From Eukaryota sp. TZLM1-RC (taxonomy: Eukaryota; Protista; Metamonada: BaSk clade): a stretch of DNA of 64,000 nt. Below the pieces are notes generated by a model. That model had not been told where the DNA came from. It was given only the letters and a program-made list of their open reading frames with translations, and searched no databases. The stretch spans positions 2,666,001 through 2,730,000 of the forward strand of contig JAUPSS010000003.1 of assembly GCA_040285825.1 (NCBI GenBank), given 5' to 3'. Every line of letters begins with the position of its first letter. Positions within the stretch are counted from its first letter, which is position 1. This document shows, in pieces, positions 14,844-61,564 of this stretch. The position numbers were made by a program, and so were the translations under genes.

Positions 14844-15168
<325 letters not shown>

Positions 15169-15169
15169 T

Positions 15170-15940: not shown

Positions 15941-15941
15941 A

Positions 15942-16163
<222 letters not shown>

Positions 16164-16169
16164 TTTATA

Positions 16170-17522: not shown

Positions 17523-18209
<687 letters not shown>

Positions 18210-18557
18210 GTATTCTTCAATATTCATGGGCGGTAAACTTAAAATTGTTGCAAGCTCAGAATTTCACATTGATTGTCAATAGGAAAAAGTGCTTTTTATT
18301 AATTAAACGTGTTTTGTAAAAAGTTAAGAACTTGTATCACCATTCTATTGTTGTGACTTAATATGGCCTTATCAAGCTTGATATCCTGTGTTATAAATAC
18401 TCAAAGTTCCAATCTCTTATTGGTTCCAAGTCCTCTTGTGCTTATTCAGTAAAATTACTTATTTAAACTACAAATTGCGACTTGAAATTGTTAGTCTTTA
18501 TACACACCAGCTAATTGTCAATATGTGTCAATTTCTTCAACTAAAACGGTCACATTG

Positions 18558-24572: not shown

Positions 24573-24759
24573 GTAGTGAGAATAATCAGCTCATCTATCA
24601 AATTTTACACTTGTCACCCCATTTTCGACTTCTGGTTGCCTGTTCTGGGAGGTTTTTAACCCTCAACTTGGTTTTGGGAGGTTTTCACTATTCCCACACT
24701 TTCCCCTCACTTCATTTTCCCTCACCTCACCAAAATGGAATTTCAACTCTATGTAACTC

Positions 24760-25190: not shown

Positions 25191-25624
25191 TGCCCCCAAC
25201 GCAGCACTTTCAAACCGTTTTCCTAAGATTTTTTTAGAAATTCAATCAATTTATCTATCCTAAATGAACCCTGGAGAAAACCAACAAAGAAACAAGAAAG
25301 TACACGCTTGTACTTGCTTCAATTGTGATGTATCCGGGACAATTCCACAGAAATGATATTATCAATAATGATTGAAGTTTGTTAACAATAATTGAGTTCT
25401 GCGAAACAGTGAAAAGATTTCTGTATGTATGTTATCATGAAGCTTCAGTTGTTTTGATGAACACACAACCATCCTTTTATGAACAGCAATTATAAATCCT
25501 CTATTAATGAGAAAAACATTAAAACAGCCAACAAAAGATTCACATATTTACACTGTTGTGACAGCATGTCAATGCTAAAACATTAAAATCAAATAATTAA
25601 GCCAATAAATAGTTATTTATTTTC

Positions 25625-27494: not shown

Positions 27495-30400
27495 TTAGCT
27501 CCTCTTCCTAATTCTATTAGTGCGTCTAGGCTTCTTAGAAGGCGTAGACTCATTGGAGGTACCTTGTCGTCGACTAATGGTACGTTTTCCAATTTTCTTG
27601 TTATCCTTACTAAATAACTTATAAGCTTCTGAGTGTCTAACCGAATGGAGTGGCTCTTCTGTTGTCTCACCGCCAAACCACTGAACAGTACAGAAACTAC
27701 CTGAATCAGAGTGGTATTCTGAGAGGATTTTCTCTATAACGTGTTTTTCGGAATCGCCCGCAGCGACTGCCTTGAGGAATTCAATGTCCTGTGGATTTTC
27801 TGCGTTATAGATTTTGCAATCTTTCTTGGCAGCTTTTAATTCTGAGCCAGTAGTAAGATTCTTCAATAATAAAGTGGATTTGGAAGGAAGGTCAATAACT
27901 AAAAATGGTCCATTCCAAGATCCATGCAATATATTATTTTGCTTGGTTTTACGTAAGACGTAGTCACCAATATTAAATACTATAAAACACGAATTAGTAT
28001 TATCTACTGAAGACGGAGTATTTAATGTTTGGTGACGCTCTGCTTCTTCCCTTTTTTCTTGTAGACGAGTGTTTTTCATTTTGATGTCATCTAATAAAGG
28101 GATATTAGTTTCAAATTTGGATAAATTTCCTAATATATTAGCAGGGTCTGTTCTTGGACTAATCGAAGAACCGAACATGAGTTCGTATGGGGTAAAACCA
28201 GTTTTTCTGCTTTTTAGTAGAATTTATTAATAGTTGGGATATAGGTACGTATGTAGACCAATTTCCGTAATCATTGAAATCTATTAATAGTTTCCTTAAG
28301 CATTGAAGAACGTCTCTATGTTTACGTTCTACAAGTCCATTACTTTCTGAATAGTGGGGAATTGAGTTACTCATCTCAATCGCTAATCTGTTACACACTA
28401 TTTTGAAAGTCTCATTGGCGAACTCAGGTCCATTATCACTATGAATTAACATAGGTATGCCAAAGATAGCGCAAACATTCCAAATCAAGGCATCTGCGGT
28501 TTCTAAGGCATTGAGTTCTTTTAGAGGGACTAAAATTGTATATCCAGTAAAAGAGTCTACAAATACTAATAGATATTTATTTCCTTCGTTGTCAGAATTT
28601 AGGGGTCCAATTGTATCGACATTTAATCTGGCAAAAGGACGATCTGCCCATAAAGATCCTGTGGAAGGTGTTTTTGATCTTTTAACTGGAGCCGTTTTTT
28701 GACAAGTTGGGCATCTTTTGACATGATTAATAAGGTCCTTTCTCATATTGGGCCAGTAGAAATCACTTTTGGACAGTTTGTGTAAACTATCGTTTTTGCT
28801 GGGGTGACCAGATTGAACCAAACCATGTATTAATAATAGTGCCTGTTTTCTGAGGCTCTTTGGAATCAAAATTTTGTTTTTATTATTTTTCCAAATTTGA
28901 GTGTTTACATCTAGAATTGCGTTATCAAATAAAGAGTCGTTGTTGTTTTTGGCTATTTGTTGTTCAGATCTTATCTTAGACAGCCAAGAAGAAAAAATAG
29001 GTAGGTCTTGGTGTCTACTTAGAGATGAGATTGAAGGGATGTCTTCAAGATCCGAATCAGAATCATCGTCTAGTGGAGGTATCTCGTAATTTGAAAGTAA
29101 AGTGTCTGGTATATTTATACTACAAATAGAAGGAGTTTCCTCGTTTTGATCCAAATCAATATTCCTCGATAACATATCTGCCCAATGGTTGTCTTCACCA
29201 GGTTCGTGGACTATGTCAAAGTCGAATTCAGATAGTATCGGCAGCCATCTCTTTACAATTCTATTTTTCTCTGGGGCTGTAGCCAGGAATGCAATGTTTT
29301 TATGATCTGTGAAAATTGTTAAATGTCTAGTCAACAAGTAGCTTTCTAAACAACTTTCAGTTAAAAATCAGAAGTATTGCGTATAATTCTTTTTGTAAGG
29401 TGGACCATTTTCTTTGTGTTTCTGTAAGTAATCTACTATAGAATGACAAAGGTTTCACTTTCCTTTTTATTTAGCGGGGTTCCTGCAGGAGAGTATGGTT
29501 CAATTTCTTGCCAAATAACACCTCCTACTGCTACATCTGATGCGTCAGTACTTATTAATACGCGCTTGCCCGGAGCTGGTAATTCAAGGGGCATGTGGTT
29601 TACTATTAGGTCTTTTATTTGTTTTTAAGTAATCGTCATGCTTGCAAGTCCATTTAATTATTCTGGGTTTTCCTTTAATTAGCTCGTTAATTGGAGCAAT
29701 TAATTCAGAAATACCTGGAAGCCAATCTCTAATATAATTGATGGATCCAACCAATGAGCGAACTTCTTTCACTGTTTTTGGTCTAGGGATTCTCATCAAG
29801 GCTTCGATTTTTTTCTTACTTATAAATCTAGTTTTTATCCTGGAAGGTACTTCCTAAAATGTCGATAGGGTGTTTTGATGTTACGAATTTACATTTACGT
29901 AAGCCTATATTTACACGTCTATTTCTGGCGCATTGGAGGACTCTTTGTAATCTCTTATAGAATTCTTCGAAAGTCGTTCCAACTATTATGATATCATCAA
30001 TATATATAAAAACGCCATCAATTTGGAATATTTCCATCATTACATTTTGGAAAACTGCTGGGATGTTCTTTAATCCGAAGCAAGCTCTTTTAAACATAAT
30101 TGATCTTCCAGGGATTGAGATTGATGTTTTCTCAATATCCTTCTCAGCAACATTCATCTGCCAGAAAGCTTTTGGTAAATCAAGCGTGGCGATGTAATTT
30201 GCTCTACTCAAAAATTCTAATATATCACTAATCCTAGGTAGATTAGGCTCTACTGAAATCGTATGGGCATTAACTCCATCTTTACCACTAAAGTCTCCAG
30301 TTAACCTGGGTTTTTTGCCGTCAGGGTATATAACTAAGACAATAGGAGAGCTGAATTTATAATTAGATTCAACTGCATAGCCCATTTCGATCAGTTCATC

Positions 30401-31270
30401 AAATATTTTGTTTGCTATTTCCATTTTGCTGGGATTTAACCGTCTAGCAGGTTTATGTACTATAGCATTCTCATCTCTAAAGGGGATTGTTAGAGGATTA
30501 CAATCGATTCCTTTTCTATTAGGAGTTTCACTAAAATTATCGCTGAATAATTTTAGTAGACTCGTTAATTTTAATTTATTATTACTATCATCTAAATTTA
30601 TCTCACATCCAGATCTTGCTAATTGCTCCTCAAAATCAGAAGGACTTGGTGATTGGTTATCTAAGTTCCCAATCGAATGTTGAGCGATCCTAGAGTCGAA
30701 TTCTGATTCTGCATTTAGCAAAGTGCGGTGTTCTTTGTCTAATCTAATGAAAAGACCATCATCCGTCTGAAGCCCAAGTGCTTTTAACATGTCTGTCCCT
30801 ATTAATAATTTGTTCGAACCCGGGATTATGGGAAGAGTATGTTTATAGTGAACTTGTTGCGCAATGCTTCCTACGTTGAACGACAGAATACCAGTTGCAC
30901 TCCCTAGCGATTTTGTGGATACGTTATTAGCTGGTAAGAACTTAATAGTATCCTTGCTATTGATTGACATATGGCATTGTTCAGCTAAATCTGCAGTAAT
31001 AACTGAACAAAACGCAGCCGAATCTATAGTCGCAATCATTTTAATATCATTTATTGATATCTCCAGTCTTAGAAATGGAGAACGCTGGGACCTGACGTGG
31101 TTTTCACTAACCGTAGAATTAATATCAAAAATGCTATTGATATCAGAGCTGGTTTGGTGAATTTGTAGAGGAATTAAAAGATTTTGTTGAGCTGTTGGAA
31201 AGTTGTTGACTGGGTTTCCTAAATCGGTTGTTGATTGGTTGTGATTGATTGCGTTGATATGTACCCGATT
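27495..31270 (-). CDS. pol (PR-RT-RNaseH-IN-chromodomain), split by several frameshifts
   Basis: LDLPKAFWQ, FGLKN, YIDD, TDASD, FTDHKN, CPTCQ, VDTIGP, SDNGPEF, NGLVER, VIEKIL..VQWFG. Confidence 0.9.
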
Positions 31271-34200
31271 AGGAAAGTTGCCTGTCCTGCTGTTCCGGTT
31301 GCTGTTGTTGATCCGTCTGTGAGGAACCGTACTCGAACGGGTCGGTTTTTGACTCAGTAGGGGATGCGTTTGATGATATGTCCTCTGTTGTGTTTATGTT
31401 ATGTATAGGTCTGTACTGACCTCTTCCTTTATGACCTCTATAACGGCCTCCACGGCCTCTAAATTTGAATCTATGTACACGTCTACCACGGCCACCTCGG
31501 CCCCTTTCTACACTGCCTCTACTAGCAGGCGCCTCCTGTTCTCCTAATCTGAATCTTTCTTCTTTGGGAACTCTGCTTCTAGCACAACGAGGATCTTTGC
31601 ATTCGAATACAGTGTGGCCAACAGGATTGTTACCTTCGACGTTGCTGCAGAATGTACAGAATTTTGACCCTTCTCGTTCATGCTTTTCAGGGATGTATTT
31701 GTGTTGAGGGGTTCCTCTTGACTTTCCACCTGATCGTCTTGCTCGTTTTGTTGGAGCCTGGGCTGATGGTGTTACTCCTCTTGAGTAAGTTCTCATTGCC
31801 GTGAGTCCCAAAGGAATATCTTCTTCGTTAGCCCTGTTCCTTAGTACATCCATTGTGGGCTTGTTTCCTGCTGTGTAACACCAAGCGAGGAAATGTCTTC
31901 TCGTTGTCGATATCAAATCGAGTAGAGTTGTTTTGTTCGGTGAGTCCCACAAGGATTCCCTAGTCCATACTGGGAGGAGTTCGCTTGATATAGCAAAGTT
32001 ATCCAGACCCATAAGGAAGTACTCGGCTATTAGAGCGGGAGATATGGTTATCAACCCACTGCTTCCTCTAATTAAATCGGGGATGGTTAGGTCGGTCATG
32101 TAGGTGGTCATTCTCAAGACGTCTCCAAAATCTTCTACATAACGACCAAACTCGTTGTCAGCCTCATGCCTATTGTGGATTTTCCTCCAATTTATTCTAG
32201 GCTTCATTAGAGCTGTACAAGCCTCATGATATGATGTGAATTGCGTTCTTTTTAACAGAAATACCATGACGTCGGCGTCGGTATAATCAACACCGAGTAA
32301 ACCTTGACTCTGCCATCTAGATAGAAGGCTAGGGTCGATCATGCTGGATATTCCTGTGGGGCAAGTGCTCATCATCATGCTCCTAAATAAATCATAATGG
32401 TGGATTGGGGGTCCGAGCTTATCTGTTATAGCTGGATCAATCCTTACCAAAGGCTGTGTTGTATCCCTGGTGATCTCGTCGCGTATATGTTTGGGGAGAT
32501 CTTTAATCCTATCTTGGGTTATTTCTGCTTGGCCTTCTCCAAATAGCTGGGTAGCTATCATAAAGGCTCTGGTCCAATCTGATTGACCTGGGGCTTCGAA
32601 GCTTCTATTAGCTATCTTTCGCCCGTATTTATCCCAAGTTTGATATTTTAAAAGAAAAGCTATGATAGACATTTTGTTAATAGGGTCATCAGCGGATAAT
32701 CGAGGTCTTTTTATAGTCGATATCCTTAGACCGTGGATCAATCTGTCTATGAAGGCTACTAGCTATGCTCATGTCAATAGCTCTTCTTGAGGATTGTAGG
32801 TCCTCAATACGCATAGGTCTATCGGAAGAAGAGTCTCTTACTGAGGGTTGAGGAGGAGCCGTTTCTCCAACGACTGGCCCGTTCAACTCAATGTCTTCTC
32901 CAATTTCACTTTCCATGGGTTGACAGGAAGTTGGTTCTTCCTGAGGTGCAACGTCTTGTCTTGTTACAGGTTCCGGGTCGTTCACTGTTGGAACATGATC
33001 GGGTATGCTGTCGATAGAGCAGACCTGTATTGGTTGGCTTTTTCAGAAATTATAGGGGCTACAACAGGCAGTTTGGGAAGGTGGAGAGATGTGGATGGAT
33101 CTCCCGTTACCCATTGTCTAAACTCTCGTTGTTTTGTGAACGAGTTACCATGTTGTTGGGTGTAGTTGTTAGGACGGCTCCTATACGTGGATACAGCTGA
33201 TCGTTCCGTATGAATGTTATTTAGAGCGTCTGCATCAAACCAGGGGGTTACTGGTTCAAGCTTGTCTTGTTCACTACTATCCTCCTGCTCCATAAATTCC
33301 CTAAAATATGTGGGAGCACCCTCTGTCAGCTCCGTGTAATTATGGATTTCCGTATCAAAGTTAGGATCAAACCAGGCAGGCAATTTGGATTGTAGGATGT
33401 CTTCCGAGTCGGTCCTACTTCTCTGTTCGATGGAGAGAAACCTTATTCTCCTGCCGTATTGATCTAGGAAGGAGGCCTTCCAATCCAATCTATCTTTGAT
33501 GGGAAGAGACATCAATTCATTGATTCTCTTGTCCATTCCAGAGATTCTGGGGCGGCGTTCTGCGTTACGCCCGAATGTCTCTCTACTCAATTTATCGAGT
33601 GCCTTTATGAGTTCATTCCTTTCATTGAGGGGAATTTCCAATACCTTTTGGGTATCCCCAATCATTCCGAGGGTCTGAAAACCAACGTTTCTGCCTCTTT
33701 TTTGAACGTAACTCCATAAAGGGGGAAGTTGCTCGAACAGACAGAAATCTGTTGGTTCGAGGTAAGCCTCCGCGTCCTCTCTTAATAACTTGTAGAACCC
33801 CTCAGAAGAGTCGTCTTCTCCCTCCATTTCATCTAGTTGAGATTGAATTTCTTCATATTCTCCTAATGGGGAAGACGTGTCTAAGGTGGGATCTCCATCC
33901 GTTCCCTTTGAGACAGGTTCTAGAATTGGGAGGGGAGAGGGAGCCAGGTCCGTTCTCGTTGCCTCTTCCATTGCTTTGAGGGGAGAGGGAGCCGGGTCCG
34001 TTCTCGTAACCTCATCTGTTTCTTTTTTCCTGAGGGGAGAGGGAGCCGGGTCCGTTCTCGTTGCCTCATCTGTTTCTTTTTTTCCTGAGGGAGAGGGAGC
34101 CAGGTCCGTTCTCGTAACCTCATCTGTTTCTTTTTTCCTGAGGGGAGAGGGAGCCGGGTCCGTTCTCGTAACCTCATCTGTTTCTTTTTTCCTGAGGGGA

Positions 34201-34415
34201 GAGGGAGCCGGGTCCGTTCTCGTTACCTCTTCTGTTGTTGAAGATGGAGGAACCTCGTCCACTCTTTCATCTTCTTCTACATTAAGGGAGGGGGAGGTGG
34301 GATCCGGGTCCGTTGCCTCGTTGCCCTCTATATCATGTGTATGTGACGCTGGTACCTGCTGCATATTAAGTGGTGGATTAGAGTCAGAGATATCTGGTTG
34401 GGAGATGTCTGACAT
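31269..34415 (-). CDS. Long gag-like ORF (~1050 codons, two frameshifts) with N-terminal 18-aa repeats and a CX2CX10HX4C knuckle
   Basis: ORFs of 477, 98 and 490 aa overlap in series; CTFCSNVEGNNPVGHTVFEC; RGG-rich tail. Confidence 0.75.
33930..34230. repeat. 54-bp coding tandem repeat (EVTRTDPAPSPLRKKETD), ~5.5 copies
   Basis: Direct reading. Confidence 0.9.
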
Positions 34416-34659
34416 GCTGTAAAGTGTCTGAAGATGTTCGCTAATGCTGAAGTTATGGTATACCTTTTGACTTTAAAATGGCCAATAATTATTGTTGCCT
34501 AAAGTCTATTGTAGTAAAGAAAAGTCTGATTTATTTTCTATTCATATTATATAAGCCTTAGGGCGCCAACATCTATGCAATACAAATCCAACTATCCTTG
34601 TTGTTGAGCTTTCATTGACAAGCTTCTTCCTAAAGTTAACAGAATGATCATAGGGTAAC

Positions 34660-38929: not shown

Positions 38930-39084
38930 GTTTTGTTTTGTGTATATTTGTAAAATAAAGGAAGTTTAGATAATAAATCAAATATATTGTGAATCGATTT
39001 TTTCCTCAACATTTCACTCACTCAGAATTCTTGATTGCTTGAACTTTGGTAGAAAGTTTTTTTTTAAAAATTTAATTTTATTCA

Positions 39085-41130
39085 AAACCTATAAATCAAC
39101 ATCTAAAAAATCCATCTCTCCCAAAACAAAAACACTAGATGCAACTCTCTCATAGTGAGATCCAAGAGAAAGCAAAGCATCAGAAACCATCTTCAACATC
39201 CCCTTAAAAATAGAAAACACAATTCTATTTTGCCAAAACAATTTGTTGAAATTTCTCCCAGTTCTTCTCTTTACAATCATTTCAAAATCATCCAAAAAAC
39301 GTAAAGCAGTTGGTGCAAGTGAACCAAAAAGGGAAAATACAAATGGATACAAATTATATTTTGCATGCTGTAGACTGGCCAATTTGGACAAAGGTTCATT
39401 GTATTTTTTGAATTTAAAATTTTCAGCATTTGAAAGGGGATTATGAATTTCAGAATTAACAAGCCTTTCATTTGAGGCATAACAAGGATCATCAGACAAT
39501 ACATCCAATAAAATGAAGTTTCCATCTAATCTAGGTAATATGACATCACCTCTATTGTTCTTATGAAAATCATCAGTATCAAACAGATTTGACAACAGAG
39601 GTTCCAAAAAGGATTCAATTCTATGAGATTTACACATACAATATAACTGGTCTCTTACAGCATCATGAACCTTGCTTCTAAAAGTAATCAAATGTTTACA
39701 ATTTAACAAATGAGTAGTTGTAATTTCTCGAGAACATTTACAAATTAAATTATGAGGTAAATTATCAGGCCAGATAAAGGAACGAAATCTCATATTCAGA
39801 GTCCAAGCAGAATCGGATAAGAGAGTACCATAAACTTGTGGAATTGTTGTTACTAAGGCAGAAGAAGTACTGTCACACATATCTTGTAAAAGATTTGCAA
39901 AAGCGGGATTCTTTTTCTTGGCCAAGCCAAGTCTAACATCAAAATCCAAGCTTTCAAAAATCTTTGACAATTTTTGTTGAAGCTTTTTACAGCAAAACTG
40001 TAAAATTATATAGAGATCGGTTTGGAATTTCTTGAATTGATTGAGGAAAACATTTGGTCCAAATTTGTGGCGGTAATTTTTCAAGTTCACAAGATAACTC
40101 ATACAAATGGGGACTACAATTGGGGACTAACAGATGAGAATCATCAGGAAATCTACGAGAAAATTCATAAATAAAATTTTTGCCACCACCCAAGAATGCT
40201 GATTGACACAAAATTGAAGATTTAGTAAAACCAATACCACCCAAATTTGCTGAAGAAAATAAATGGCTTTTCAACATTCCTGGTTCTACATCCAATAAAT
40301 CAGCAAAAAATTCTGTTCTCAATGAATTAAAAGAACGACAAAAATCTAATGCTATGGAAGGAGCACAAGATCTCAAAATGTGGGTTATTCTCCCAGTGTA
40401 GCAAATTTTTAGCATGAAAAATTTTAATATGCTTTTCTATATCTAAAGAAGAAATTGAATCAAGTTCAATTTTCATTTTTTCCAAAATAACTTGCAATTC
40501 ATTCTGAATTTGAGGCACATTTCCTAACCAACAACCAAGGAACTTAAAAGCATCACTACTATAATTAGTAAATGGGACAATAGAATCGTTTATCACGAGG
40601 TCTTGAGCAGAAGAGCCAATCAGAAGGCATTTGCTGGCATTAAGATGAAGCCCAATATTTTCATATGAATCGGCAATTTCTTGAGCAACCAATTCTAGTA
40701 AATCAAATGAACCAATCAAGGATATATCATCCATATAAGCTACTATTTTTATAGAAGGGTATTTTTGCTTAATGATATTTAAAGTTTTGTGAATAGCTAA
40801 ACGAAACAATAATGGGCCTAAAGGATCTCCCTGCTTCACTCCAGAAGATGATTTAAGACCAAATGAATTAAAAATTAAATCTGATTCTTTCCCACAAAAA
40901 TGGTAGAAAAAACTCGATAGCTCAGGAAAGTCAGATTTAATAACTTCAAAAATTGCTTCTCGCTTTACAGAATTAAAAGCATTTTTAAAGTCGAGATTAA
41001 AAATAAAATTATTTTCCTCTGCATTAAAAAAGGTATCAGAGGCAATAGCAGCAACAGAAGCACCATCAATTGTTTTGATTCCAAATTGATGAGGATTCAA
41101 AAATGTAGAAGCTTTGTCTTTGACACGATC
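39085..41130 (-). mobile_element. 5'-truncated RLE non-LTR element, family C (RT+RLE, frameshifted)
   Basis: LDFKNAFN, GVKQGDPLGPLLF, AYMDD, CKC..HLLNC, HDAVRD, RGD. Confidence 0.92.
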
Positions 41131-43269
41131 TTTGGTAGAAAGTCTCAGCAGTTTATGCAGAGCTAGGTTCAATTTTTGACATAAATATTCTTTCACCGAA
41201 TATTCTTCATCATCAACAATTACCCACGAATGCAACTTGTACAAAATTGCACTTGATGCTTTGTAATATGTCACAAGAGTTTATTGGTACCATTTGTTCT
41301 GGAAGTGAGAAAAGAGTGTAGAATTGAAATTTCTGGATAAAACAATTAGTCCTTTTTATTAAAATTTTGTTGTGTGGAGTGGGCTACACATCTGACAAAC
41401 AGATAAGCCGAATTCAACTCAAGAATTTAATAAAAAATGAATGTAAATGATTAACTGAATAACGTAACAATTAGCCCAATTACTGTGAAGTACCAAATAG
41501 AGTCCGTGCTTAATAGAGCCCATAACTGAATTCTGTCCAATTTTTACATTATTTGTGTATAATTTTTTTCGAACATGAACCATAATATGTATTGTTATCA
41601 AAAACTCTAACTTTCTTTCTTTTATTTACCTTCACAATGTTTTTCTCCATCGCATCTCGTTACCACAGGACTACTGGACCTGCTGATGTGTTTCCTAAAA
41701 TCCGCAAGAGTTGAAAAAAGCCAGAGTTCAATACTCTATTGGTTTTGAACAGAAGGTATTGGAAAAGCTTTTGGAAAACGGCAAGTCACATATTCTAAGA
41801 CGTTATACCCAACTTGATCACCGTCAAAAAGAAGACTGCGCAAGAGACAGGATTGCAATAATGTCAGCAGAAGACATTGTAGCATAAATGTAATTGTAGT
41901 TTTTTAAGTTTTTTTATAGTCTGTGTTTAATTTAATTAAACTGTGTATTAGTTTATTCTTGATATAGGGTGTTAGGTTGAATGTTGGACCAAATAGAGCC
42001 CATAAATGATTTTTGGCGTCTTCTTTTGGCACTTGACAGTAGTAATAAATAGAGCTGGCCCAAGGGTTTGGATTCTCTCAGATCCCGGTAACCTTTCGAT
42101 AACCATTCTCTTACATTGACTCTTACCTCTTGTCTTCCCTCCATTGAACTTGACACTTTTTTAACTGATCTCCGCATCTTTATCTAATGTAGGTGAACAG
42201 CTTTATCTAATGTATCAGTTTACATTGGCTGATTCCTCACTTATTGGCCATTTTTCCCAGACTCTTGTTGGTATTAACAATGCAGATGTTACCTTTACTA
42301 ATGTTGATGTTTAGATTCACAAGCTTTTGGACATGTTGAATTAACCGATTCTAATTTCACTGCAGTGATGCCTGTGGGCTAGAGTCAGACATATGAACAG
42401 AGAGAGTAATTTATTACGACGGGAAATGAGCTATAGTGAATTTCAATACCATCACTAGTGAAGTCTCCATGACAGAACAATAAACATTAAGCTAATATAC
42501 AAGAACAAATAGATAAGTCTGACTACACTCTAGAATAGTGTAAAGACTAACAGCAGTAGATGTTGAATTTAACAATCTTGAAAGTAATGTTAATATTGTT
42601 AAAGCTTTAAATTTAAATTGTTTATTAATATAAACAATAATTTATTAAAGAAAAACTAACAATTAAATATAACTGACAATGATAATAACTAAGCTTCCAA
42701 AGCTTGAACAAGGCTTTCCACTCCTTTTCTGCGTCCCCTGTGAATAATGTCAGCATCTTCACATCCAGAAATCACAACTTGGAAACCAATGATTTGTTAT
42801 TCCTGGCCAAAAATAGCCTTAACCCTAGCGTCGGTCGTTATTCCTTTTAAAATTATGCCTCGAACAAAATTGTTGTCTACCGTGACGGGTATTCGGTAAG
42901 CTTTGCCCTCGAACCTTCCTGAAATTGCAAAGTTTTTCATGACTCTGCATTGCTTTCCATCATTCAATTTTAATGAACTGGCAATAGCGTTGGTTTTGGC
43001 CCCGTTGGCCTTCTTTCCTACCTTTTGATAATCCTGGGAAGCCATTTTGTCTTTGGGTTTTACGACATATGGCGGCAGCCCAAGGTGGAGGTATTTCTTC
43101 ACCTTTTGAACTATTTAACGCTGTGGAGTCTTTTTTGTTGTGAAAATCACATACATTAATGACATAGATTAATGCAACAAACCTCCATGATTTTGTGAAT
43201 TAAATTCTTATACTTTCTTAAAAAATAAAACCGGAATTTTATTCAACAACAAATATGAAAACATAAAAT

Positions 43270-44580
43270 ACACAATTAAAACTCCACATCCTCAAAACCT
43301 GCCTCCCCTACATCAAAACAATTAATTGCCAATGTTTCAGAAAATTTCCTAAAAGAAGATAGTGAATCAGAAATCAGTTTTGCCATTCCGTTAAAAATAG
43401 AAAATACAATCCTGTTTTGCCAGTAAACACGATTGAAAATTCTTCCAGTTCTTTCCTTTACAACTACAACAAAATCCTCAAGGAAAGCCATAGCAGCCTT
43501 ACCCAAAGATCCAAGCAAAGAAAAACAAAGGGACATAAATTATATTGAGCATGAGAATTTTCATTAATCGAGGAAATGGGTTTCGCATATTCAGCAATTT
43601 TATATTTTTCGCCTGCAAGAAGAGGATTATTTACATCCGAGTTAATGAAATGTTCGTTAGAAGAATTACAAGGGTCAATGGACATAGCGTCTAAAATTGT
43701 AAAACTACCATTTAAGCCAGGAACAACTAGATCACCTCTTGTCAGACCCATAGAAGCTCTGTTGTAACGCGTACTATCAATATTGGGATCATTAAGAATT
43801 AATTTTGATAACAGCGGTTCTAAAAAGGAATCTACTCGATATGATTTGCACATTACATAAATTTGGTCCCTGATGTTATTATGCACTTTTCTTCTAAATG
43901 TAATGAAATGTTTACAGTTCAAAAGATGAGTAAACAAAAGAGGTTTACCACATTTACAAGTTAATTGATTGGGCAAAATGTTTGGCCACAAAAATCAACG
44001 AAAACGCATGTTTAAAAGCCATTCATTGTTTTTTAACAAAAGCCCATAAACAGAAGTAATTTGAGTTACTATAACAGCAGCAGAGCTATCACGAATATCC
44101 TTTAAATTACCGAAAGCGGGATTTTTAGTTTTGGCCAAGCCAAGTCTTACTTCATAATCCAAGCCTTCATATAATTTAACCAGATGGTGTTGAAGCTTTT
44201 TCACGCAAAAACGTAAAATTGGAAGTGATCGGGTGGGAATTTCTTGAATATTTTGAGGAAAACACTGGATCCAGATATCACTAGGCAAATTATCTAAGTC
44301 AATTTGAAGTTGATTCAAATAAAAATTAGATTCACCATGGATCAGATGAACATCATAAGGAAACCTTTGAAAAAATTCAAAAACAAAATTTTTTCCACCT
44401 CCTAAAAAAGCTGCTTTACATCAAATCGAAGATTTCGTGAAACCAATTCCACCTAAATCAGCAGAACAAAAAACATGACTTCGACTTAAAGATTCATTTA
44501 CCTCCAATAATGAGGAAAAAAAATTTGACCCGAAGTTTGTTGAAAGATCTACAAAAATCAAGAGACACTGAAGGAGGAGT
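43270..44580 (-). mobile_element. RLE non-LTR fragment, family D
   Basis: CKCGK..HLLNC, RGDL, DAMSIDP, EKYKIAEY. Confidence 0.88.
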
Positions 44581-44599
44581 TGATCTTGAAAAATTGTTC

Positions 44600-48343: not shown

Positions 48344-49302
48344 TGGCCTCGAGGAATTGGATGGACTCAATTTTTGAAAACTTTTCAGTGAAAGAAATGG
48401 AGTTGTCGCTGTGATGATCAATGAAGCTTTCACTTCAACAATATATCCTGTTTGTTTTGAATAGGTTGATACGTTTTTGAGGGTAACCAATCCTACATTA
48501 TATTAGGGCTGTCCAAGTTCTGTTCTGCTCAGTTCAGTTCAGAAATAAATTTGGAACTTGAAATGAACTGAACTGAACCAGTTCCGAACCGGTATAATAA
48601 AAGAATAGTCTTTTTTTAAAAAAAATTTTATTTTGAAAACAATACGAACTAATTTCCTTAATATCTTCTCCATTCCTTTAGAGAGACTAACGTGACAACG
48701 GACAAGACCATTTGGGAGACGGGTTATATGTTTCAGAACCCAGGACCTGTTGGGTGAAGTGAAAGGAGAAGATATTGTGTGTTCTTCCATGGAAATGAAA
48801 CGAAAGAAGTCAAATGCAAAATATAAACTTTGATTTGAAAGTTTGAAAAACCAAATTAAACAAAAATTAAACAAATATTTATTAATTACTGGTTGTATTC
48901 ATTTATTTTAAGTCATTGCAATAACTGAAAACAAGTTATAAACAGTAGTAGAAAAACAAGCTGAGACATTGGCTGAACTGGTTCAGAACCAGTTCAAACT
49001 TGTTCGGAACCTGAACCTATCATTCTTGAACTTAACTCAACCGGAAATTCTCTGAACCTGAACTGAACTCAACCAGTTCCGAAATGAACCTGGACAGTTT
49101 TACATCATATAAGAACAAAATTCCGGTTACTACTTGTCATGGTTTAATAGCTTGCAATAGTGAGAGTTGTAGATTCAGTAACAAAGGCTCAACAAAGCTT
49201 TTCAATAGAAATAGGCTACCTTGTCTGAATATGTCTGCAATCGCCGGAGCCAGAATAAGTGCCAATGAAAGGGCTCAGTATCTGTGTAGTAAATAGTTTT
49301 TG
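48344..49302 (+). pseudogene. Degenerate 3' copy of Fanzor family 3, interrupted by a hAT element
   Basis: RGIGW..MINEAFTS..PVC..RVTNP | PVTTCHGLIACNSESC..LFNRNRL..QYLCSK matches 56677-57010. Confidence 0.88.
48504..49102. mobile_element. Non-autonomous hAT element (599 bp)
   Basis: Imperfect TIRs TAGGGCTGTCCAAGTTC / GAACCTGGACAGTTTTA; 8-bp TSD CATTATAT/CATCATAT; subterminal GAAC(T/C) repeats; BED-finger remnant RSWVLKHI..VRC on the minus strand. Confidence 0.88.
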
Positions 49303-51139
49303 TGAATACAGTGAATCCTCTATATCTACAATGGGTCGGGACCAGAAAAAACTGTTGCATATATGGAAATTGTAATTATAGAGGGTCTTTTCAAAGTCAA
49401 CAGCCAATCACAAATTATCCTCAATAGAAACAAGAGGAGCTTTTTTTCTCAAATTCTGACCGAAGTCCTTCAGAACTGACAAAAGAAGCGCAGCTACTAC
49501 TGTTTCATCTACTAATCTATTGTAACTAATTCATTAAGAACAATTAGATATACCCTACAGCATTAAATAATATATTCAATTATCTTCATCTATGTTGTTG
49601 TTTTCGATATCAATTTCAAAATAGTACCAGAATAATAAATGCAGATACAAAAATGCAAAAAAAACATAAAATATTCTATATTTCCCAGGAATGATCCCAA
49701 TCAAGTTCTATAACATCATCTGCTTCCTCCCTATTCAACCCAGTAGACAATTCTGTAAAGTAATGAAATGAAATTAGTTTTTTTTGGAAAAAATATTTCA
49801 ACTCTATGATCACCTGACATAGCTTGAAGCAGAGAGCTCTCTATCGAACTGTAATATGACCAGCTCATTAAATAGTAATATGACATGTAATGATGTGTTT
49901 AACACCGTTGCAGTTAAGGAGGGAGTTTTAGTTTAATTTTCCAAAGTGGGACTTGAAATAAGTTCCAAATTTCACTTAGACTGAAATTGCAGATTCGGAG
50001 GGTCAGTGTCCAATACACAATTACTGAAATTGTTGGAACATAAAATGGTGTTGCAGTTATAGAGGGTTCACTGCACCAAAATTGTTCATATACTTCTAGG
50101 AATTTCTCTTCTCAAATGCTCTCCCTCAATGACATCTGTGAGTTAGACCATGATTTTACCTAATCGCAGCAGGGTTTTCCACCAAGGGTTTGATCAGCTT
50201 ATCTGCATCTGCTTTTGTCGTACTTGTTTTCTTTGCCTTCATTGTTATTCTCATCAAACAGAAGATCAACATGGATTCTTTGTCTAACATCAACAACTAC
50301 ACATTCCTCATCTTTATCACTTCGCTCTCTGTTACTCTTGGAACTCTTGTGTCCTACTGGATCGATCTCAGCATCTTCACCTGTTTCAAGATACTAGCTC
50401 TCACTTTGCCCATTGTGGGTCTGTCAGGAGTCCGTAGTTTCAAAGGTTAGTATATGTTGATCTTTGTTGTAAACTTGTTTTTGGTTTTTGTTTTTGTTGT
50501 TTTACATTCGATTCTCTCAATAACTACACCATTATTCACACTTCTAAACTGAATCACTTATATTCTAACATTAATTATATCAATTTTCACAGAGCTCTGT
50601 GTTTCAAGATTCACCACCAGTAGTTTTTCGACTTGGTTCCTTCACCAGTTGAACATTGGTATTCTGCATCTGTGTACTTCCTATCACATCACATTAAAGA
50701 ACCATTGAAGCTGACATACAGATATGATATTTGAAATATCATTTAATGGTGGATACATTATATTTAAAGGAGGAAGTATGACATTATTTACACCAATTTG
50801 AGCTCTTTATTGAATTTGTTCAAGTAGATTCTCATAAGTCATGACCGACATTTCAGAAGTATTCTTGTTAGTTCTGAGACACGATTGTACATTTCCATTG
50901 TTTGCTAGATAACTATCGAAGGTCTTTGAGAATCGGCTTTACGGAGATTCCTGAGACGGAAAAATCTCGTTGATCCAATATTGTTAACATTGTTGTTGAA
51001 ACAAATTTACCTAGATGAATAGGGATAAATCAATGTTTTGACACGTTGTAACGAGTTAGTAGATAAAATGCTATGTTACACACTATTGTACCGTCTATAT
51101 TTTTAGTTTTTTTCTCATTGATCAACTTTTATTTATCGA

Positions 51140-52400
51140 TTAATTTCACCATTCCCTTAAAAATAGAAAATACAATCCTGTTCTACCAGTAAACTCGATT
51201 GAAAATTCTTCCAGTTCTTTCCTTTACAAATACATCAAAATCTTCCAGGTAAGCCATAGCAGCCTTTCGTAAAAATCCAAGCAGGGAAACAACAAAGTGA
51301 CATAAATTATACTGGGCATGAGAATTTCCTTTACAGAGGAAATAGATTTTGCGTATTGAGCATTTTTTTATTTTTTGTCAGCAAGAAGAGGATTATTGAC
51401 ATCTGAGTTAAAGAAATGTTCGTTAGAAGAATTACATGGGTCTGTGGACATGGCATTTAAAATAGTAAAACTACCATTTAAGCCGAATCCAAAAAATCAC
51501 CTCTTGTCAAACCACATAGATGCTCTGTTGTAGCGCATACTTTGAATATTGGGGTCATCAAGAATTTATTTTCTTAGCAAAGGCTCTAAATAGGAATCTA
51601 CTCGAAATGATTGACACATTACATAAATTTGGTCCCTGACATTAATGTGTACTTTGCTTCTAAATGTAATGAAATGTTTACAGTTCAAAAGATGAGTAAA
51701 CAAAAGAGGTTTACCACATTTACAAGTTAAATCATTGGGCAAATTGTTTGGCCATAGAAAACAACAGAAACCCATGTTTAAAAGCCATTCATGGTTTTTT
51801 AACAAAAGTCCATAAACAGAGGGAATTTGAGTTACTAAAGCAGCAGCAGAATTATCACGAATATCCTTTAAAAAATTACCGAAAGCGGGATTTTGAGTTT
51901 TGGCCAAGCCAAGTCTTATTTCATAATCCAAGCTTTCATATAATTTATCCAGATGGTGCTGAAGCTTTTTCAGGCAGAACGTAAATTTGACAGTGATCGG
52001 TTGGGAATTTCTTGAACATTCTGAGGAAAACACTGAATCCAGATATCACTGGGCAAATGATCTTTTTCAAATTGAAGTTGATTCAAATAAACATTTGATT
52101 CACCATGGATCAGATGAACATCATAAGGGAACCTTTGGAAAAAATCAAAAACTATATTTTTACCACCTCCAACAATGCTGCTTTACACAAAATCGAAGAT
52201 TTGGTAAAGTTAATTCCACCCAAATCACCAGAACAAAATAAATGACTTCGAATCAAAGTTTCATTGACTTCTAATAAAGAAAAAATTTTTGATTCGAAGT
52301 TTGTTGAAAGATCTGCAAAAATTGAGAGATACTGAGGGGGAGTTGACCTTAAAATATGAGTGAATTTTCCCGAATTACAAATTTTTTAAATGAAAAGTAA
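51140..52400 (-). mobile_element. Degenerate non-LTR fragment, family D
   Basis: Colinear with 43390-44580. Confidence 0.85.
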
Positions 52401-52667
52401 CTTTAGTTTGAAAGTTCTTTCCAATAATATTCATTATAAAATATTCTAGAATATTCTAGAATTGGAAGAATACTTGATCGAACCTTTTGGCAAAATAGAA
52501 TTGAATTTTCTCTTTTTAAAAGAATGTATAACCTTTATTCTAGTTCGTTGTTATCACTTGAATGTTTTTCTGAATAAAAAGCTGTAGGTAAATTTTCAAT
52601 GGTAGATGCGGAGTTTGAGGAAATTGATTTTTGGTGTTTAACAATGTTGTTTGAATAAAAATATATA

Positions 52668-53184
52668 AATAATTTTGGTTCTGATGATAGAGGTGATGTA
52701 TACTGTGATTGGATTGATAATTCTGAAGCTATTGTTGTCCTTGTCTCATGTAATGTTGCAAATGATACTTTGGTTCACAGAAGAAAACTTAATCCTGTGG
52801 CTGCTCTGGATTTTAAAGCAAAAGAGAAACATAGAAAAATATGATAAAGATATTGAAGAGGCTAATGTCGATAGAAATACACAGCTGGTTTTTATTGCTT
52901 TCCCATTTTCGATAAATGGAAAATTATCAGATGAAGCAGAAACTTTTTTGAATGACTTACAAAAAATGGTGCAAGAAAAAACAATGAAAAGATTTGATAT
53001 TTTTTATGGCGTTCACGGATTCAATTTGCCATTATTAATAGATTACCTCGGTTTTTCAATCGAATAATAGAAGCTTTAGCTAGACAGCAAGCAGATCAAG
53101 ATTTTGTAGAGGAAATCTTGGTTCAATGATAGTCGTCCCATTAGTTATGAGTTAATTTAATTAAGTGTGCAAATTCAATAAATA
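52668..53184 (+). mobile_element. 3' fragment of non-LTR family A
   Basis: Near-identical to 8902-9415. Confidence 0.9.
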
Positions 53185-56145: not shown

Positions 56146-56615
56146 TCAAGAGAAAAATTGTTTTAAATCTCGTTCAACATTAGAAATTTTGCATGTCAAA
56201 TCACCTATATTAGATTCTATTTGACTAATCCTTCTTTTTAAATCCTCCTCCATGTACTTGCAATGTGCTAACGCCTCCGATGGCAAAAACTCCGCATGAA
56301 ACCCAAGACCAACTTCCACAAACACAGTGGAGGTGTCGGGACTATGGTGAGAAAGAAGAGAAAATAACATACACGTGAGCCTCAGAAAAAACAGAAGATC
56401 CAAGATCAACAAGACTTGTGAGCTCCATTGAACCAGTCTCTACGATGTGTGTCAATGTTTTCTGTAGGTTCTGACTGCTGTAAGGGTAATAATGACCAGA
56501 CAAACAAATGCATAAGTTCGGTATTTAAATGATCACGTGTGATGCTTTGTTTCTGAAGGTCTTTTCGGAGAGCATCTTGAAGTAAAGAGTGAATCGAAGA
56601 GTCTAAGGTTTGCAT
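56146..56615 (-). CDS. UXT: UXT-like alpha-prefoldin; introns 56478-56505 and 56342-56372
   Basis: The spliced product reads LVDLGSSVFSEAHVPDTSTVFVEVGLGFHAEF, flanked by coiled coils. Confidence 0.8.
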
Positions 56616-56676
56616 AAGATTTGTGGGAAATTCCCATAAATACACGATCAATTTTCGTGTGGAATAATTACAAAAA

Positions 56677-59600
56677 CTATCTACTACACAGATACTGAGG
56701 CCTTTCATTACCTCTCATTCTGGCTTCAGCAATTGCAAACATATTCAGACAAGCCAGCTTATTTCTATTGAAAAGCTTTGTTGAGCCTTTGTTACTGAGT
56801 TTGCAACTCTCACTGTTACAAGCTAATAAACCATGACATGTAGTAACTGGAGTCTTTTCTCTTCTATAGAATCTGGGATTTGCGACTCTCAAAAACGTAG
56901 CAACCTTTTCAAAACAAACAGGACATTTTGCTGAAGTGAAAGCTTCATTAATCATCAATACTTCAAATCCATTTCTTTTCAGAAATTGAATCCATCCAAT
57001 TCCTCTAGTAGGTCTCTGATGTTTCAAATTCTTGGAACCTTTTTTACCATAATCACCCATTAGTATTAAAGTGTCTTTTGGATTGCCAAATTGCTGAACA
57101 AGGTTTTTTAACAACCAACTTTCAGTCCTTTGCTTGTGAATAAAAGCTTGCATTTTATGAATGCTCCACAAGTCAAGACTATAAAAGTCAATTGTCAAAA
57201 AAACTTGCCGAAGTTTGGCAACCACAAAGTTGGAAAAATTTATAAAAGTTGCTGAATTGGCAGCAAACGCGGATAATTCGGTGTTTGCATCTTCAATTGT
57301 CATTTCATTAGACTCTATCATTTGGTTCCTGTCGTAATCTACCTCAGTATACTTTATCGCCCATCGTTTTTGCTTTTCATTCATCCTACTTTTCAAAGAC
57401 GATGACATCTGAGTCATTCTTAACCATTTGTACTTCTTGTCTTGATTCATCACCCGACTATTTCTTTGCTGTTCAGTTTCATGTTCAGGTACCATGGCTA
57501 ATTCTTGATCAGTCTTTCTGCTCCCAAAATACAATAAATCACGTTTTCCAGGATCACAAACAACAATTCGTTTGCCTTGAACAGTATCAACATCAACATC
57601 ATCAATATATAAATCCGAAATACTAGCCTTGTTGTCTGGCTTACATTTCTGACCTTGTAAATCCCGACGAACAAATTCTACTGCAATATTAAATCCATCT
57701 GTGGGATAATGTTGTTGAATTTATAGCTCTTCTGTTTGAACATTGGTTGGTTTAAGTCGAGAATATTAGACCAAAAGTCAAATTGTTGAGGTGGTTTAAG
57801 TCTATGAACTTGGGCTAGTGTATTGACCATTTTTAATCTCTGATCAGGCAACAAATCGTCCATCAATGTTTGTCTAATAATTGTCCATATTGTTCTTGTA
57901 TCAATGGGAAAATATCCAGGACCTACAGTGGTTGAAACAGGAGAAATGTGATAAGGTTTTTTCTCTCTACTGGAAATATATTGGGCAATTGTAATTGCTG
58001 GTTTTAGGAATATTTGAGGATCTTTTTCAACAGCGTCTGCAAGAAAATGTATATCCACTGGAAATATGTTATCAACTAAATTCTCGTCAGTGACCAAATT
58101 CTCAATTTGGCAAGTAAAAGGCTCAATAAGACCTTCAAATATGTCTCTAAGTTCATTATTTCTTATATCATGATGTTCACATAAATCGAAAAATTCATCA
58201 TTCAGAAGGTCTGAAATATTTTCAGGATGATGAAACAAAGAACTCAAGCAATCTCTATCATCAACTAAAAACAAATTTTTGAATTGACGAAGCCTAAATC
58301 TATATAGTGAAATTATAGTAGATAATGGCGTTGAGTATCCACCCAGCTTGTGCATTTCTGATAACACATTTTCCACATCTGGTTTGTCAAAGTAAACATT
58401 AATAAATCGATTAATATGTTTTTCATAATTCAATTTCAAGTTATTCTCAAAATTGGCAAACATTACTGGGGCCATATACCCAGGTGGTCTACTGAATCCA
58501 TCAGTTGGAAATCGTGGAAAGAACTCAGGCCTATATCTCAAATGGTCTACATAACTCAATGTTTTGTTCAACTTTTGTTGTTCAAAGGTGGTCGATAATC
58601 TATAATCTCCTTCACCATAAACAAAGTTTTCAAAATCCTGTGGAAATGCACTCTTTGGTTTCACCATTTCTTGCCCATAATACTCAGCTGAAATATAACG
58701 AATTCTGGCCATTAATGATTCATATAATTGGGCAGATATTCGTGGTAATGACAAATTACGTTCAAAACAAGACTGTAAATACAGCTTTAAGCAACAAGTG
58801 GTGTGAATACGTAACTGTTGAAATTTTAAAGCAGTTTCTCTCAATTTGAGTATCACATTCGAATGTTTAACCATTGAGTTGACGGTTGCTCGAATGGTTT
58901 TATAAGATGATAAAATAAATTTGTCTTTCTGAAACAGCACGAAAAGTTTCAGACAAAGGATACAATCATGAAACCCATATTGAATCGAATTTTGTATCAG
59001 AGGAGAAGTAGCTAAACAATCAATTGGCAAAATATGGGAAAATTCCTGATGAAGTTTGATTTTCTTTTCATTTATCATTTTATATGCCAAATTGCCTAAC
59101 CCATGTCCGTAGGGTATTTTTATGAATTTTTTGGCAAAAACCCAAGTATCTAAAAGAAAAAAGCCATTTTCCCTGATGATAACTTCTCTCCATCTCGGTG
59201 AAAGTTGATTGAGTACATCAATTGCTGTATCATCTCGAACAGTGGGAAATGGTAAATCAAAATAATTCAATCTATTTTTTAAAACCTGTAAATCAAACTG
59301 CATTAAATTGTGATTAAGAAAACAATGGGGTTGATGAGTACCAGCAATGTTTTTTCGTCAGAGAATATTTTTGCCTGCACAACCATATCAATGTCTGGTA
59401 ATCTGATTTGAAAGCTCATTCTCAACATAAGTGAATATTTACTCTCCAAAAAGAAATTATGGTGGTCCAACTTACCAAATAACAATCGAAAGTAAAAACA
59501 CTTTTTGATCTGAAATCCACTCATCCATTTGCTCATCATTTTTGATTTTCAAAAGATTTTTACCCTCTTTTTTCCTTTTGTTGATAATCTTGTCAGGAGG

Positions 59601-59957
59601 GAAAAATTGGCCATCATGACTTTGGTAAAGATGACCATCCTGATAGGTTTCAAGATCAAAGCACATAACAGTAAGAAGATTTTGATTTGGGTTCATTGAT
59701 TTGAATTGAATCAATGCACCAGGCTTCAAGCCACTACGACTTGGTTCAATTTTTCTGACCATACTCGGTTTCAATGGTTTTTTTGTCAAAATCTTCCTGT
59801 TTTCAATATTCAACATTTTATTCTAAATACATATTTCTCGGTTCAGTGCATTTTGTTGTTTTTTCAGCTTACGCTTTGATGTTTGTTGGTCAAAAATCGC
59901 ATTTCTAATAATTTTTGATGGAGGAGTTGATTCAAAATTAGATCTTCTCTTTCTGGG
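56677..59957 (-). pseudogene. PolB-type 3'-5' exonuclease-Fanzor1 fusion (~1090 aa reconstructed; one in-frame TAG, ~3 frameshifts), family 3
   Basis: ExoI CFDLET; ExoII PHCFLNHNLMQFD; LLDTW; ExoIII QYGFHD. The Fanzor N-terminus YKTIRATVNSMVK follows in the same ORF, then TDG, IVVCDPGKRDL, MINEAFTSAKCPVC, CHGLLAC and LFNRN. Confidence 0.88.
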
Positions 59958-60035
59958 ACCAGGATTTGCTTCAACATCTCCATCAATTGTTAAATCAACA
60001 GTAAATGGGTTTGTTGATAGAAGATGTTGGCAGCT
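59955..60035 (-). other. 2A ribosome-skipping peptide
   Basis: SCQHLLSTNPFTVDLTIDGDVEANPG|P matches the D(V/I)ExNPGP consensus. Confidence 0.85.
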
Positions 60036-60064
60036 TCTGGATTGAAAAGATAAATTATAAACAT

Positions 60065-60515
60065 AATAATCAAACTCAACATTATCAAAATAACAATTTA
60101 AGACACAACATCCCATATCTAAAGTGCAAGAATCTAAACCACAAAAATGAACAAACTCATAAGCATCAAAACAACAATGTAAAACAAAACATATACAAAA
60201 GAAACATCCCACATCCACAGTACAAGTACGTAAACCACGAAAACCAACAAACCCAAAAACATCAAGATAACCTTTCAAAACAAAACACAAACAAGAAAAA
60301 CATCCCATATTCAAAGTACAAGTACCTAAACCAAAAACATCAACAAAATCAAAAACATCAAAGTAACAACAATGTAAAACAAAACACAAACCAGAACAAC
60401 ATCCCATATCTACAGTACAAATAGCTAAACCATGAAAAACAACAAACTCAATAACATCAAAGTAACAATTCAAAACAAAACACGAAGAAGAAGAGCATCC
60501 CATATCCAAGGTGAT
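60065..60515. repeat. ~96-bp degenerate tandem repeat (~5 copies) in the ORF upstream of the 2A
   Basis: The unit CTxDMGC..LCFVL.CYFDV.EFV.F.GL recurs. Confidence 0.85.
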
Positions 60516-61564
60516 TAGCACCATTGCTGATTCAACAGCACCCATATCATGACTCACATGATGACTCAGAAAAGTGCAATACTCTACCCCCACGGAAGAA
60601 TCAGAACGACGATTTCGAAAAGAAATCGAGGCTCTGACCTTCCGTTTATTCCTGTAAAACAGGATGACTGTTCCCGACTGAGGAGTTCGGGAAGAAGTAC
60701 TCGGCTGTTCTTTGAACAACAGGTTGAAGGAGGAGGTGGGAACTGAGTCCATAACCTCGTTATCCTTGTTCTCCTTTTGTGGATGCATATTTTGACCAAC
60801 GAAATTATTTGTGGAGTTTTTCAAGACGTTTAACCTACGAACCTTTATATGCACCTTTACGAACACATGGGGCTGTTGCCACTGGTCCACTGGCACTTCA
60901 TACCCAAGGCAACTCAACTCTATGATTGCTGCGGCAGTTGAACATTCCTTCATTGTTTACTCCACAGATCGATTACACATACTCTACACTGGTCCTCCTC
61001 TTCCTGGACCTATCAGTCACATGATATGGGTGAAGCGAGTTTTAGTCTTCTCTATATCCAATTCTGTCTACTCGTGGACACCTGGATCTCAAACAACTTC
61101 TGTCGTCCTCTCTTCCCATGCCCACATAGCCTCTCTACTCATTTTGATATAGAAACGGATATTTCAATTGGAAGCAAGCTGTATGTAAGAATAATTTACC
61201 ATAATCATTACCGTTTGTGAAATTAATGTAACTTACATTATGATTAACAATGACATTGAAACGATATTCTTTCTACAAAATCATGATCTGCTTGTTTTCC
61301 AGATTTTGCGATTCATTGAAAAAACAATGAAAAATTGTGTTCAGTAATACCATAAAAGATATCAAATTTCTTCATTGTTTTGCTTGAACCGATTGTGGGG
61401 TGTGGAAGTACTTCCTAGCTCTATTGAAAGTTTTGCATTTACGGAAAATAGAAAAGGAAATAAACGTAGGTTGGCTATTTTCAGACTATTAGCCTCTTCA
61501 ATGACATTATCGCTCTGTCTTTCTTTGTCCAATTCCATTTGCAGAATTATTTAGAATTATTACT

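Follow-up and report, generated by a model that had tools for sequence, protein, structure and literature searches.

Fanzor1 proteins such as SpuFz1, PpFz1 and GtFz1 (PMC3627910, PMC10432273, PMC11423790) have a WED/REC/RuvC/zinc-finger architecture with a rearranged RuvC-II Glu, and are encoded by multi-copy elements in which a structured tail separates the stop codon from the element end, followed by a variable flank. Their defining motif is a RuvC-I Asp, then, 125-275 amino acids later, [TS][TS]xx and a C4 zinc finger, with a terminal RD (PMC3627910). The same architecture and element layout occur on the minus strand of a 64,000-nucleotide stretch (the window) of contig JAUPSS010000003.1 from the free-living anaerobic metamonad Skoliomonas litria, whose type isolate is labelled Eukaryota sp. 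TZLM1-RC (PMC11603281). Here, unlike in the described Fanzor1s, a PolB-type exonuclease of about 245 amino acids stands directly in front of the Fanzor, preceded by a 2A motif and a leader and, in relatives from Skoliomonas sp. TZLM3-RCL (RCL), by optional Ulp1 domains; the fusion proteins reach about 1100-1850 amino acids, compared with 650-710 in plain relatives. The locus in the window is decayed and nonfunctional. It is a copy of a mobile Fanzor1 element that lacks a transposase and has a gene encoding, in one frame, leader, 2A, nuclear localization signal (NLS)/linker, PolB exonuclease and Fanzor1. By fold and motifs the fusion is a Fanzor1, bearing a previously undescribed fused enzyme: no natural exonuclease-Fanzor fusion was found in the literature, including the main Fanzor/TnpB surveys, within an incomplete coverage.

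The broken pieces of the window copy give only weak Pfam matches, to a 3'-5' exonuclease (E 0.0065) and a TnpB zinc finger (E 0.005), so the window alone is insufficient to prove the fusion. A search of 1.84 billion representative sequences with its 541-amino-acid open reading frame (ORF) returned full-span matches confined to Skoliomonas. Three RCL loci (L001, L007 and L008, with 1312, 995 and 980 codons) run unbroken in a single genomic frame from before ExoI to the Fanzor stop, and an S. litria locus (L011) is uninterrupted for 850 codons, from ExoI through RuvC-I. The divergent loci L003, L005 and L006 have the same junction, at which the first Fanzor1 strand begins a few residues past the ExoIII helix; in all, this junction is common to six divergent lineages. 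The concern, raised with the first-pass annotation, that the two domains might be separate nested insertions is excluded because other copies form one continuous frame and share this junction. The exonuclease-Fanzor1 fusion is therefore old and has been kept across Skoliomonas lineages. No exonuclease domain of this kind was found in viral contigs or metagenomes outside Skoliomonas by pattern-seeded searches, which are weak for distant kin.

In the TZLM1-RC genome, about 30 annotated fragments derive from the C-terminal part and 13 from the leader. A second, short fragment of the family lies in the window itself, in two parts (48349-48503 and 49107-49303, plus strand, 78-87% identity) with about 600 bp of other DNA between them; it breaks off 7 nucleotides past the stop and so lacks the hairpin tail. 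Elsewhere, locus L006 has another divergent exonuclease-Fanzor lineage (16868-17974, minus strand) 5 kb from the first, and in L002 a TnpB-like C-terminal fragment (7245-7592, plus strand; zinc finger, RDISASLN) lies immediately 5' of a truncated exonuclease-Fanzor copy.

The closest described counterparts of the front domain are the proofreading domains of family B polymerases (Pol delta, Pol epsilon, Pol alpha, herpesvirus, nucleocytoplasmic large DNA virus (NCLDV) and T4 gp43 enzymes; PF03104), with which it shares ExoI DxE, ExoII NxxxFD and ExoIII YxxxD. PF03104 scored above the Pfam cut-off in a sister copy (P0002, 30.5 bits) and in RCL relatives (42-61 bits), and yeast Pol delta is the best sequence match among solved structures. 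The domain, modelled with AlphaFold (pLDDT 88), retrieved family B polymerase exonucleases in Foldseek (E about 1e-9); fold comparison gave Z 18.6 and a root mean square deviation (rmsd) of 2.7 to Pol epsilon, likewise Z 18.6 to Pol alpha, and Z 15-18.6 with rmsd 2.6-3.5 over family B proofreading domains, compared with Z of about 12 for DnaQ/TREX enzymes and about 11 or less for RNases. The N-terminal part thus has the DnaQ/DEDD fold that had been expected of it, specifically of the PolB type. In the polymerases, polymerase domains follow the exonuclease; in the fusion the Fanzor replaces them. The absence of a polymerase palm, noted earlier from the window, extends to the intact relatives, in which Pfam reports PF03104 but never PF00136 and the chain after ExoIII aligns to SpuFz1. 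Candidate donors (Pol delta, herpesvirus and NCLDV enzymes) have similar scores.

Across the six lineages, which are 19-50% identical, 24 of 218 exonuclease columns are invariant, among them the four carboxylates and the ExoIII Tyr (D, E, D, Y, D). Comparison of S. litria copies gives dN/dS values of 0.33-0.62 in the exonuclease and 0.21-0.42 in the Fanzor, from small counts and with post-insertion decay pushing the values towards 1; the substitutions indicate that both domains are under purifying selection among copies. Given the invariant catalytic residues, the PolB fold and the dN/dS values, the predicted 3'-5' exonuclease activity is likely.

The remainder of the protein matches SpuFz1 (phmmer E 6e-33) and PpFz1 by sequence. 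When an AF2 model of a 940-amino-acid intact relative (P0055, pLDDT 82) was submitted to Foldseek, the top seven matches were Fanzor1 structures (SpuFz1, PpFz1 and GtFz1), followed by Pol delta for the front domain; modelling thus recovered both the exonuclease and the Fanzor1 that had been anticipated. The SpuFz1 match (E 4e-26, TM 0.78) is stronger than that to GtFz1 (E 5e-16), which has the same D-E-N RuvC triad and for which no fused exonuclease is described. The RuvC-I Asp lies about 206 amino acids ahead of FTSAKCPVC..CNSESC, within the Fanzor1 spacing of 2013, and the rearranged RuvC-II Glu lies just before the zinc finger, where NEAFTS aligns with SpuFz1 DEYKTS. Both residues are conserved in the clade. 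At RuvC-III, every clade member has Asn (NRNK/R) at the position of the SpuFz1 NRD, so that the family lacks the terminal RD of the strict 2013 definition and falls within the extended Asp-or-Asn definition (Xu et al. 2024). This Asn does not disqualify the family as Fanzor1, because GtFz1, an accepted active Fanzor1, has the same Asn in its D-E-N triad and cleaves DNA; D606N even increases the activity of SpuFz1 (PMC11423790). On these grounds the change from D to N was rejected as a sign of a dead RuvC.

A search with the C-terminal part found 19 viral or metagenomic relatives, all plain NRD Fanzor1s of 650-710 amino acids (one a fragment) without the exonuclease. In a quick Fanzor tree with a midpoint root (in all trees, broken pieces were joined with X at the breaks), the six exonuclease lineages and five fragments are separated from 19 plain rows by a branch with SH-aLRT 99. 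This topology is compatible with a single origin of the exonuclease-bearing Fanzors.

PF26935 (DUF8286) recurs, in precomputed annotation, in the middle region of P0007, P0055, L002 and L011, and may be a Fanzor1 sub-domain. The window has two further Fanzor-related loci. A broken plain Fanzor1 with canonical NRD (11399-12524, minus strand) groups with the plain Fanzor1s, outside the exonuclease clade; a 657-codon stop-free TnpB/Fanzor-like ORF (22620-24590, minus strand; DLG ... DRDISAA, PF07282 above cut-off) has a very long branch and represents a third distinct family, with partial copies at 3023-4400 and 18558-19296.

Within the window, six-frame translation places the minus-strand gene in five pieces (59826-60956, 59475-59822, 59306-59548, 57681-59357 and 56680-57720). 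Every motif named in the first-pass annotation was found, all on the minus strand, and its estimate of a protein of about 1090 amino acids corresponds to 1092 codons when the breaks are read through. The TAG that it had reported at 59823 interrupts the linker, and its approximate count of three frameshifts is exact: one base gained near 59477, 22 bp lost near 59342 and one base lost near 57703. It had also placed the exonuclease, the Fanzor N-terminus and the RuvC motifs in one uninterrupted ORF. The in-frame junction of exonuclease and Fanzor stands, but the stop-free stretch (57681-59357) has only ExoII, ExoIII and the WED/REC half of the Fanzor; in the window copy ExoI and all RuvC motifs are in other frames. 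Position 59957, where that annotation began the gene, falls on the Pro of a 2A-like motif, DLTIDGDVEANPG/P, which it omitted, and the element reaches past the coordinates given there, over 56623-60779, being itself 5'-truncated.

Four sister copies (L002, L010, L011 and L012) are 91-94% identical to the window copy in DNA sequence. All four lack the extra base near 59477 and retain both the 22 bp (about 59342) and the single base (about 57703) that the window copy has lost, and the TAG codon is GAG or AAG in all three sisters that reach it; the sisters bear private lesions of their own. Short-read contigs from public runs carry an insertion at 57703, some 20 additional bases at 59355-59361 and a deletion at 59480, indels of the sister type at or near three of the four window breaks. 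Comparison of the copies thus indicates that the stop and the three frameshifts are decay specific to the window copy. An alternative genetic code or read-through at TAG was rejected, since the sisters have GAG or AAG, as was programmed frameshifting, since the indels are absent from the sisters.

A 2A-like motif also precedes the exonuclease in four RCL loci (L005-L008) and agrees with the class A consensus GDVE..NPG/P (PMC12338488). It is shared with the ORFs of some non-LTR (long terminal repeat) retrotransposons (L1Tc, APE-type; cited in PMC12338488), where GDVE..NPGP likewise stands before enzymatic domains. The Skoliomonas element differs in having no such reverse transcriptase or endonuclease; its 2A heads the RNA-guided nuclease of a DNA element. 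Because the sequences upstream of the 2A are unrelated between lineages, a plausible role of the motif is to keep the N-terminus of the enzyme constant despite them. The leader frame has dN/dS of 0.62-1.31, showing no protein-level constraint, and its repeats have a between-unit dN/dS of about 1; the Cys-rich leader was accordingly rejected as a selected protein. The called 376-amino-acid ORF was likewise rejected as the true leader, its first 58 or so codons being non-element DNA and its start (60953) lying outside the element. Between the 2A and the exonuclease, the number of Ulp1-like (C48) protease domains varies from zero to two among RCL members, and the window family has none; one or two such domains follow the 2A in L007 (8001-13596), P0056 and L005 (8001-10895).

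Six copies end at the same base, 54 nucleotides past the stop (56623 in the window), and then diverge; RCL subfamilies have their right ends 59 and 52 nucleotides past their stops. The tails of these three subfamilies (52-59 nucleotides) differ in sequence and have similar tandem hairpins (z -1.6 in the window, -2.9 in L008). An Rfam search gave no match. As far as sequence alone can tell, this layout agrees with that of the SpuFz1 omegaRNA (PMC10432273). The full-length unit of 4304 bp, defined by L010 and L012, has neither a transposase ORF nor any other long ORF; searches revealed neither a target-site duplication (L010/L012) nor terminal inverted repeats, and its terminal sequence is ...TCCCAC. 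An autonomous DNA transposon (Helitron, Mariner, MuDR or IS4-like carriers) was rejected, there being no transposase, inverted repeats, target duplication or CTRR end. Five of the seven copies examined are 5'-truncated and six keep the right end, in a small sample chosen by protein matches. At the left end, L010 (9689-9705) and L012 (9426-9442) share ATTTGTTT and then (A/G)GGTCCCG, part of which may be the target-adjacent motif (TAM) and not element sequence. The would-be guide had no match elsewhere in the DNA examined. In the window the right end lies 7 nucleotides ahead of an ATG at 56615 (minus strand) that may start an intron-containing host gene, and same-strand called genes begin 42-70 nucleotides past the end in L002, L008, L011 and L012, but not in L001, L007, L009 or L010; a gene-dense genome may explain why ends lie near gene starts.

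Cleavage of vacant sites by TnpB nucleases drives re-copying through recombination (PMC10690162). The Fanzor1 cut in the non-target strand lies 14-17 nucleotides past the TAM, and SpuFz1 omegaRNAs end 14-15 nucleotides past the scaffold (PMC10432273); the proofreading activity of Pol delta excises 3' non-homologous tails in yeast (PMC9477423), and in T4 the polymerase exonuclease has an effect on intron homing (PMC2988022). In the mechanism that we propose, ribosomal skipping at the 2A would release a nuclear exonuclease-Fanzor protein, which would bind an omegaRNA from the right end and flank of the element and cut alleles without the element. As the non-target cut would fall inside the right flank, the TAM-side end would bear a short 3' tail unmatched to the donor at the left junction of the element, and this tail would have to be removed before repair could finish. 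The tethered PolB exonuclease would chew the displaced single-stranded tail back towards the junction, letting homologous repair copy the element in (homing or retention) and also blocking simple re-ligation; movement to new sites would need a transposase or replication protein in trans. We favor end processing on the ground that PolB exonucleases, to which the domain belongs, act on DNA, and removal of this tail in particular because the exonuclease is tethered to the enzyme that would make and displace that strand. We rank tail removal in homing first, though as a tentative choice that we hold at a little under an even chance. Somewhat more tentative is the fuller proposal of a natural RNA-guided enzyme that both cuts and trims: an active D-E-N Fanzor1 whose fused PolB exonuclease would resect the non-target strand, programmably, to the TAM junction and so drive homing. 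It would be made within a virus-like 2A polyprotein, which in some lineages includes SUMO proteases, and delivered by a transposase-free class of element so far confined to skoliomonads. Several observations weigh against such a role. Homing has been demonstrated for bacterial TnpB and not for these Fanzors; no empty allele or target site was found; plain Fanzor1s persist without the exonuclease, so the domain is not generally needed; and the exonuclease tree and the Fanzor tree recover one common pair among the six lineages and otherwise conflict weakly (approximately unbiased test, p 0.07 and 0.044), which may reflect module exchange or noise.

Tethering of a 3'-5' DNA exonuclease with intact catalytic residues also suits a TREX2-like action, in which both cut ends are eroded and re-ligation is prevented, giving deletion or general recombination with no specific removal of a tail. 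Engineered TREX2 fusions boost editing (PMC13370227), and many copies have ragged 5' truncations; yet destroying a target by deletion gains the element no copy, and extensive 3'-5' erosion would remove the 3' overhang needed for strand invasion. We therefore consider this role unlikely, and removal of a homing tail fits a selfish element better. Rather more doubtful is that the exonuclease is independent cargo of a modular polyprotein, acting on transposition intermediates or host surveillance and not at the Fanzor cut site. The variable number of Ulp1-like domains (zero, one or two) behind the 2A in RCL members and the weak disagreement of the domain trees are in keeping with exchangeable cargo, and retrotransposon polyproteins are known that include DnaQ-like accessory exonucleases (PMC6338049). 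Unlike Ulp1, however, the exonuclease is missing from no lineage whose front end is intact; it is joined throughout at the same very short junction, and no 2A or linker separates it from the Fanzor.

The guide itself might be the substrate, with the exonuclease maturing the omegaRNA from read-through transcripts to guide length: a guide derived from flanking DNA needs trimming, SpuFz1 omegaRNAs do end at a set distance past the scaffold, and the DEDD superfamily contains RNases. The domain is nevertheless clearly of the PolB type, which comprises DNA exonucleases (the RNases score Z of about 11 or less, against 18.6), and other Fanzors obtain trimmed guides without an exonuclease, even in yeast, which makes this role less probable than that of independent cargo. 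It is quite improbable that the RuvC is inactive and the Fanzor a mere guide module for the exonuclease as effector. The RuvC-III Asn is fixed in the clade and absent from all 19 plain relatives, which speaks for such a division of labor, but GtFz1 cuts DNA with the same Asn and SpuFz1 D606N is more active, the RuvC-I Asp and RuvC-II Glu are conserved, and a 3'-5' exonuclease requires an end from which to start. That the fusion is an artefact of chance juxtaposition, nested insertion or assembly error has almost nothing to recommend it beyond the four breaks in the window copy: two species have unbroken frames, the copies have the junction in common, both domains are under selection, short-read contigs show the family, and the intact single frames of L001, L007 and L008 effectively refute it.

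Tethering of an exonuclease to an RNA-guided nuclease is shared with engineered fusions (TREX2-SpCas9, PMC13370227; T5-Cas12f exoCasMINI, PMC12337685). Both are man-made, with a TREX-type enzyme in one and a 5'-3' enzyme (T5) in the other, whereas the natural fusion is an evolved PolB-type exonuclease on a Fanzor; it appears to be the evolved counterpart of the hand-built design. The fused PolB exonuclease gives a sharp handle on the role of Fanzors in eukaryotic mobile elements, and intact natural genes are available for testing (RCL1_001635, RCL1_006714 and RCL1_003749). Clipping of the 3' tail between junction and cut, if true, would be direct evidence for a homing role of Fanzor nucleases, and would show an element supplying its own repair step. 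The fusion could also yield a single-chain editor with altered end chemistry.

Table 1. Features of the exonuclease-Fanzor1 element copy in the window (window coordinates).
Feature	Position	Strand	Remarks
Element copy	56623..60779	-	corresponds to positions 319-4304 of the 4304-bp full-length sister L010; first ~318 bp gone
Leader frame, 5' of 2A	59997..60779	-	
Cys-rich tandem repeats, ~4 units of 96-99 nt	60065..60512	-	hydrophobic 32-aa unit when translated
2A/StopGo-like motif DLTIDGDVEANPG/P	59955..59996	-	
Basic linker with NLS-like PRKRR and KRKLKK	59667..59957	-	split by TAG 59823-59825; putative NLS role
PRKRR	59943-59957	-	
In-frame TAG	59823-59825	-	
PolB-type DEDDy 3'-5' exonuclease (predicted activity)	58929..59666	-	broken by +1 at ~59477 and 22-bp deletion at ~59342
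ExoI MCFDLET	59646-59666	-	
ExoII HNLMQFD	59292-59312	-	
ExoIII YGFHD	58965-58979	-	
Fanzor1 N-terminal half (WED/REC-equivalent)	57704..58910	-	begins ~6 codons past ExoIII helix, same frame
Fanzor1 first strand SSYKTI	58893-58910	-	
Fanzor1 C-terminal half	56677..57703	-	after 1-bp deletion at ~57703
RuvC-I CDPGKRD	57538-57558	-	
RuvC-II NEAFTS	56932-56949	-	
C4 zinc finger	56803-56925	-	
RuvC-III, Asn (NRNKL)	56743-56769	-	
Stop codon	56677-56679	-	
Conserved 54-nt tail, tandem hairpins	56623..56676	-	candidate omegaRNA scaffold; 5' start may overlap ORF end
Copy-specific flank past right end	56603..56622	-	would-be guide, role by analogy with SpuFz1 (PMC10432273)

Beyond these loci, the window is dense in retroelements (14844-18214, 25610-26978, 27498-34472, 39059-44594 and 51149-53184), comprising non-LTR relics, some of which adjoin long (ATTT)n runs, and an LTR-retrotransposon-like stretch. 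At its start (1-924, plus strand) the window encodes a hemerythrin-domain protein (PF01814, E 2e-21).

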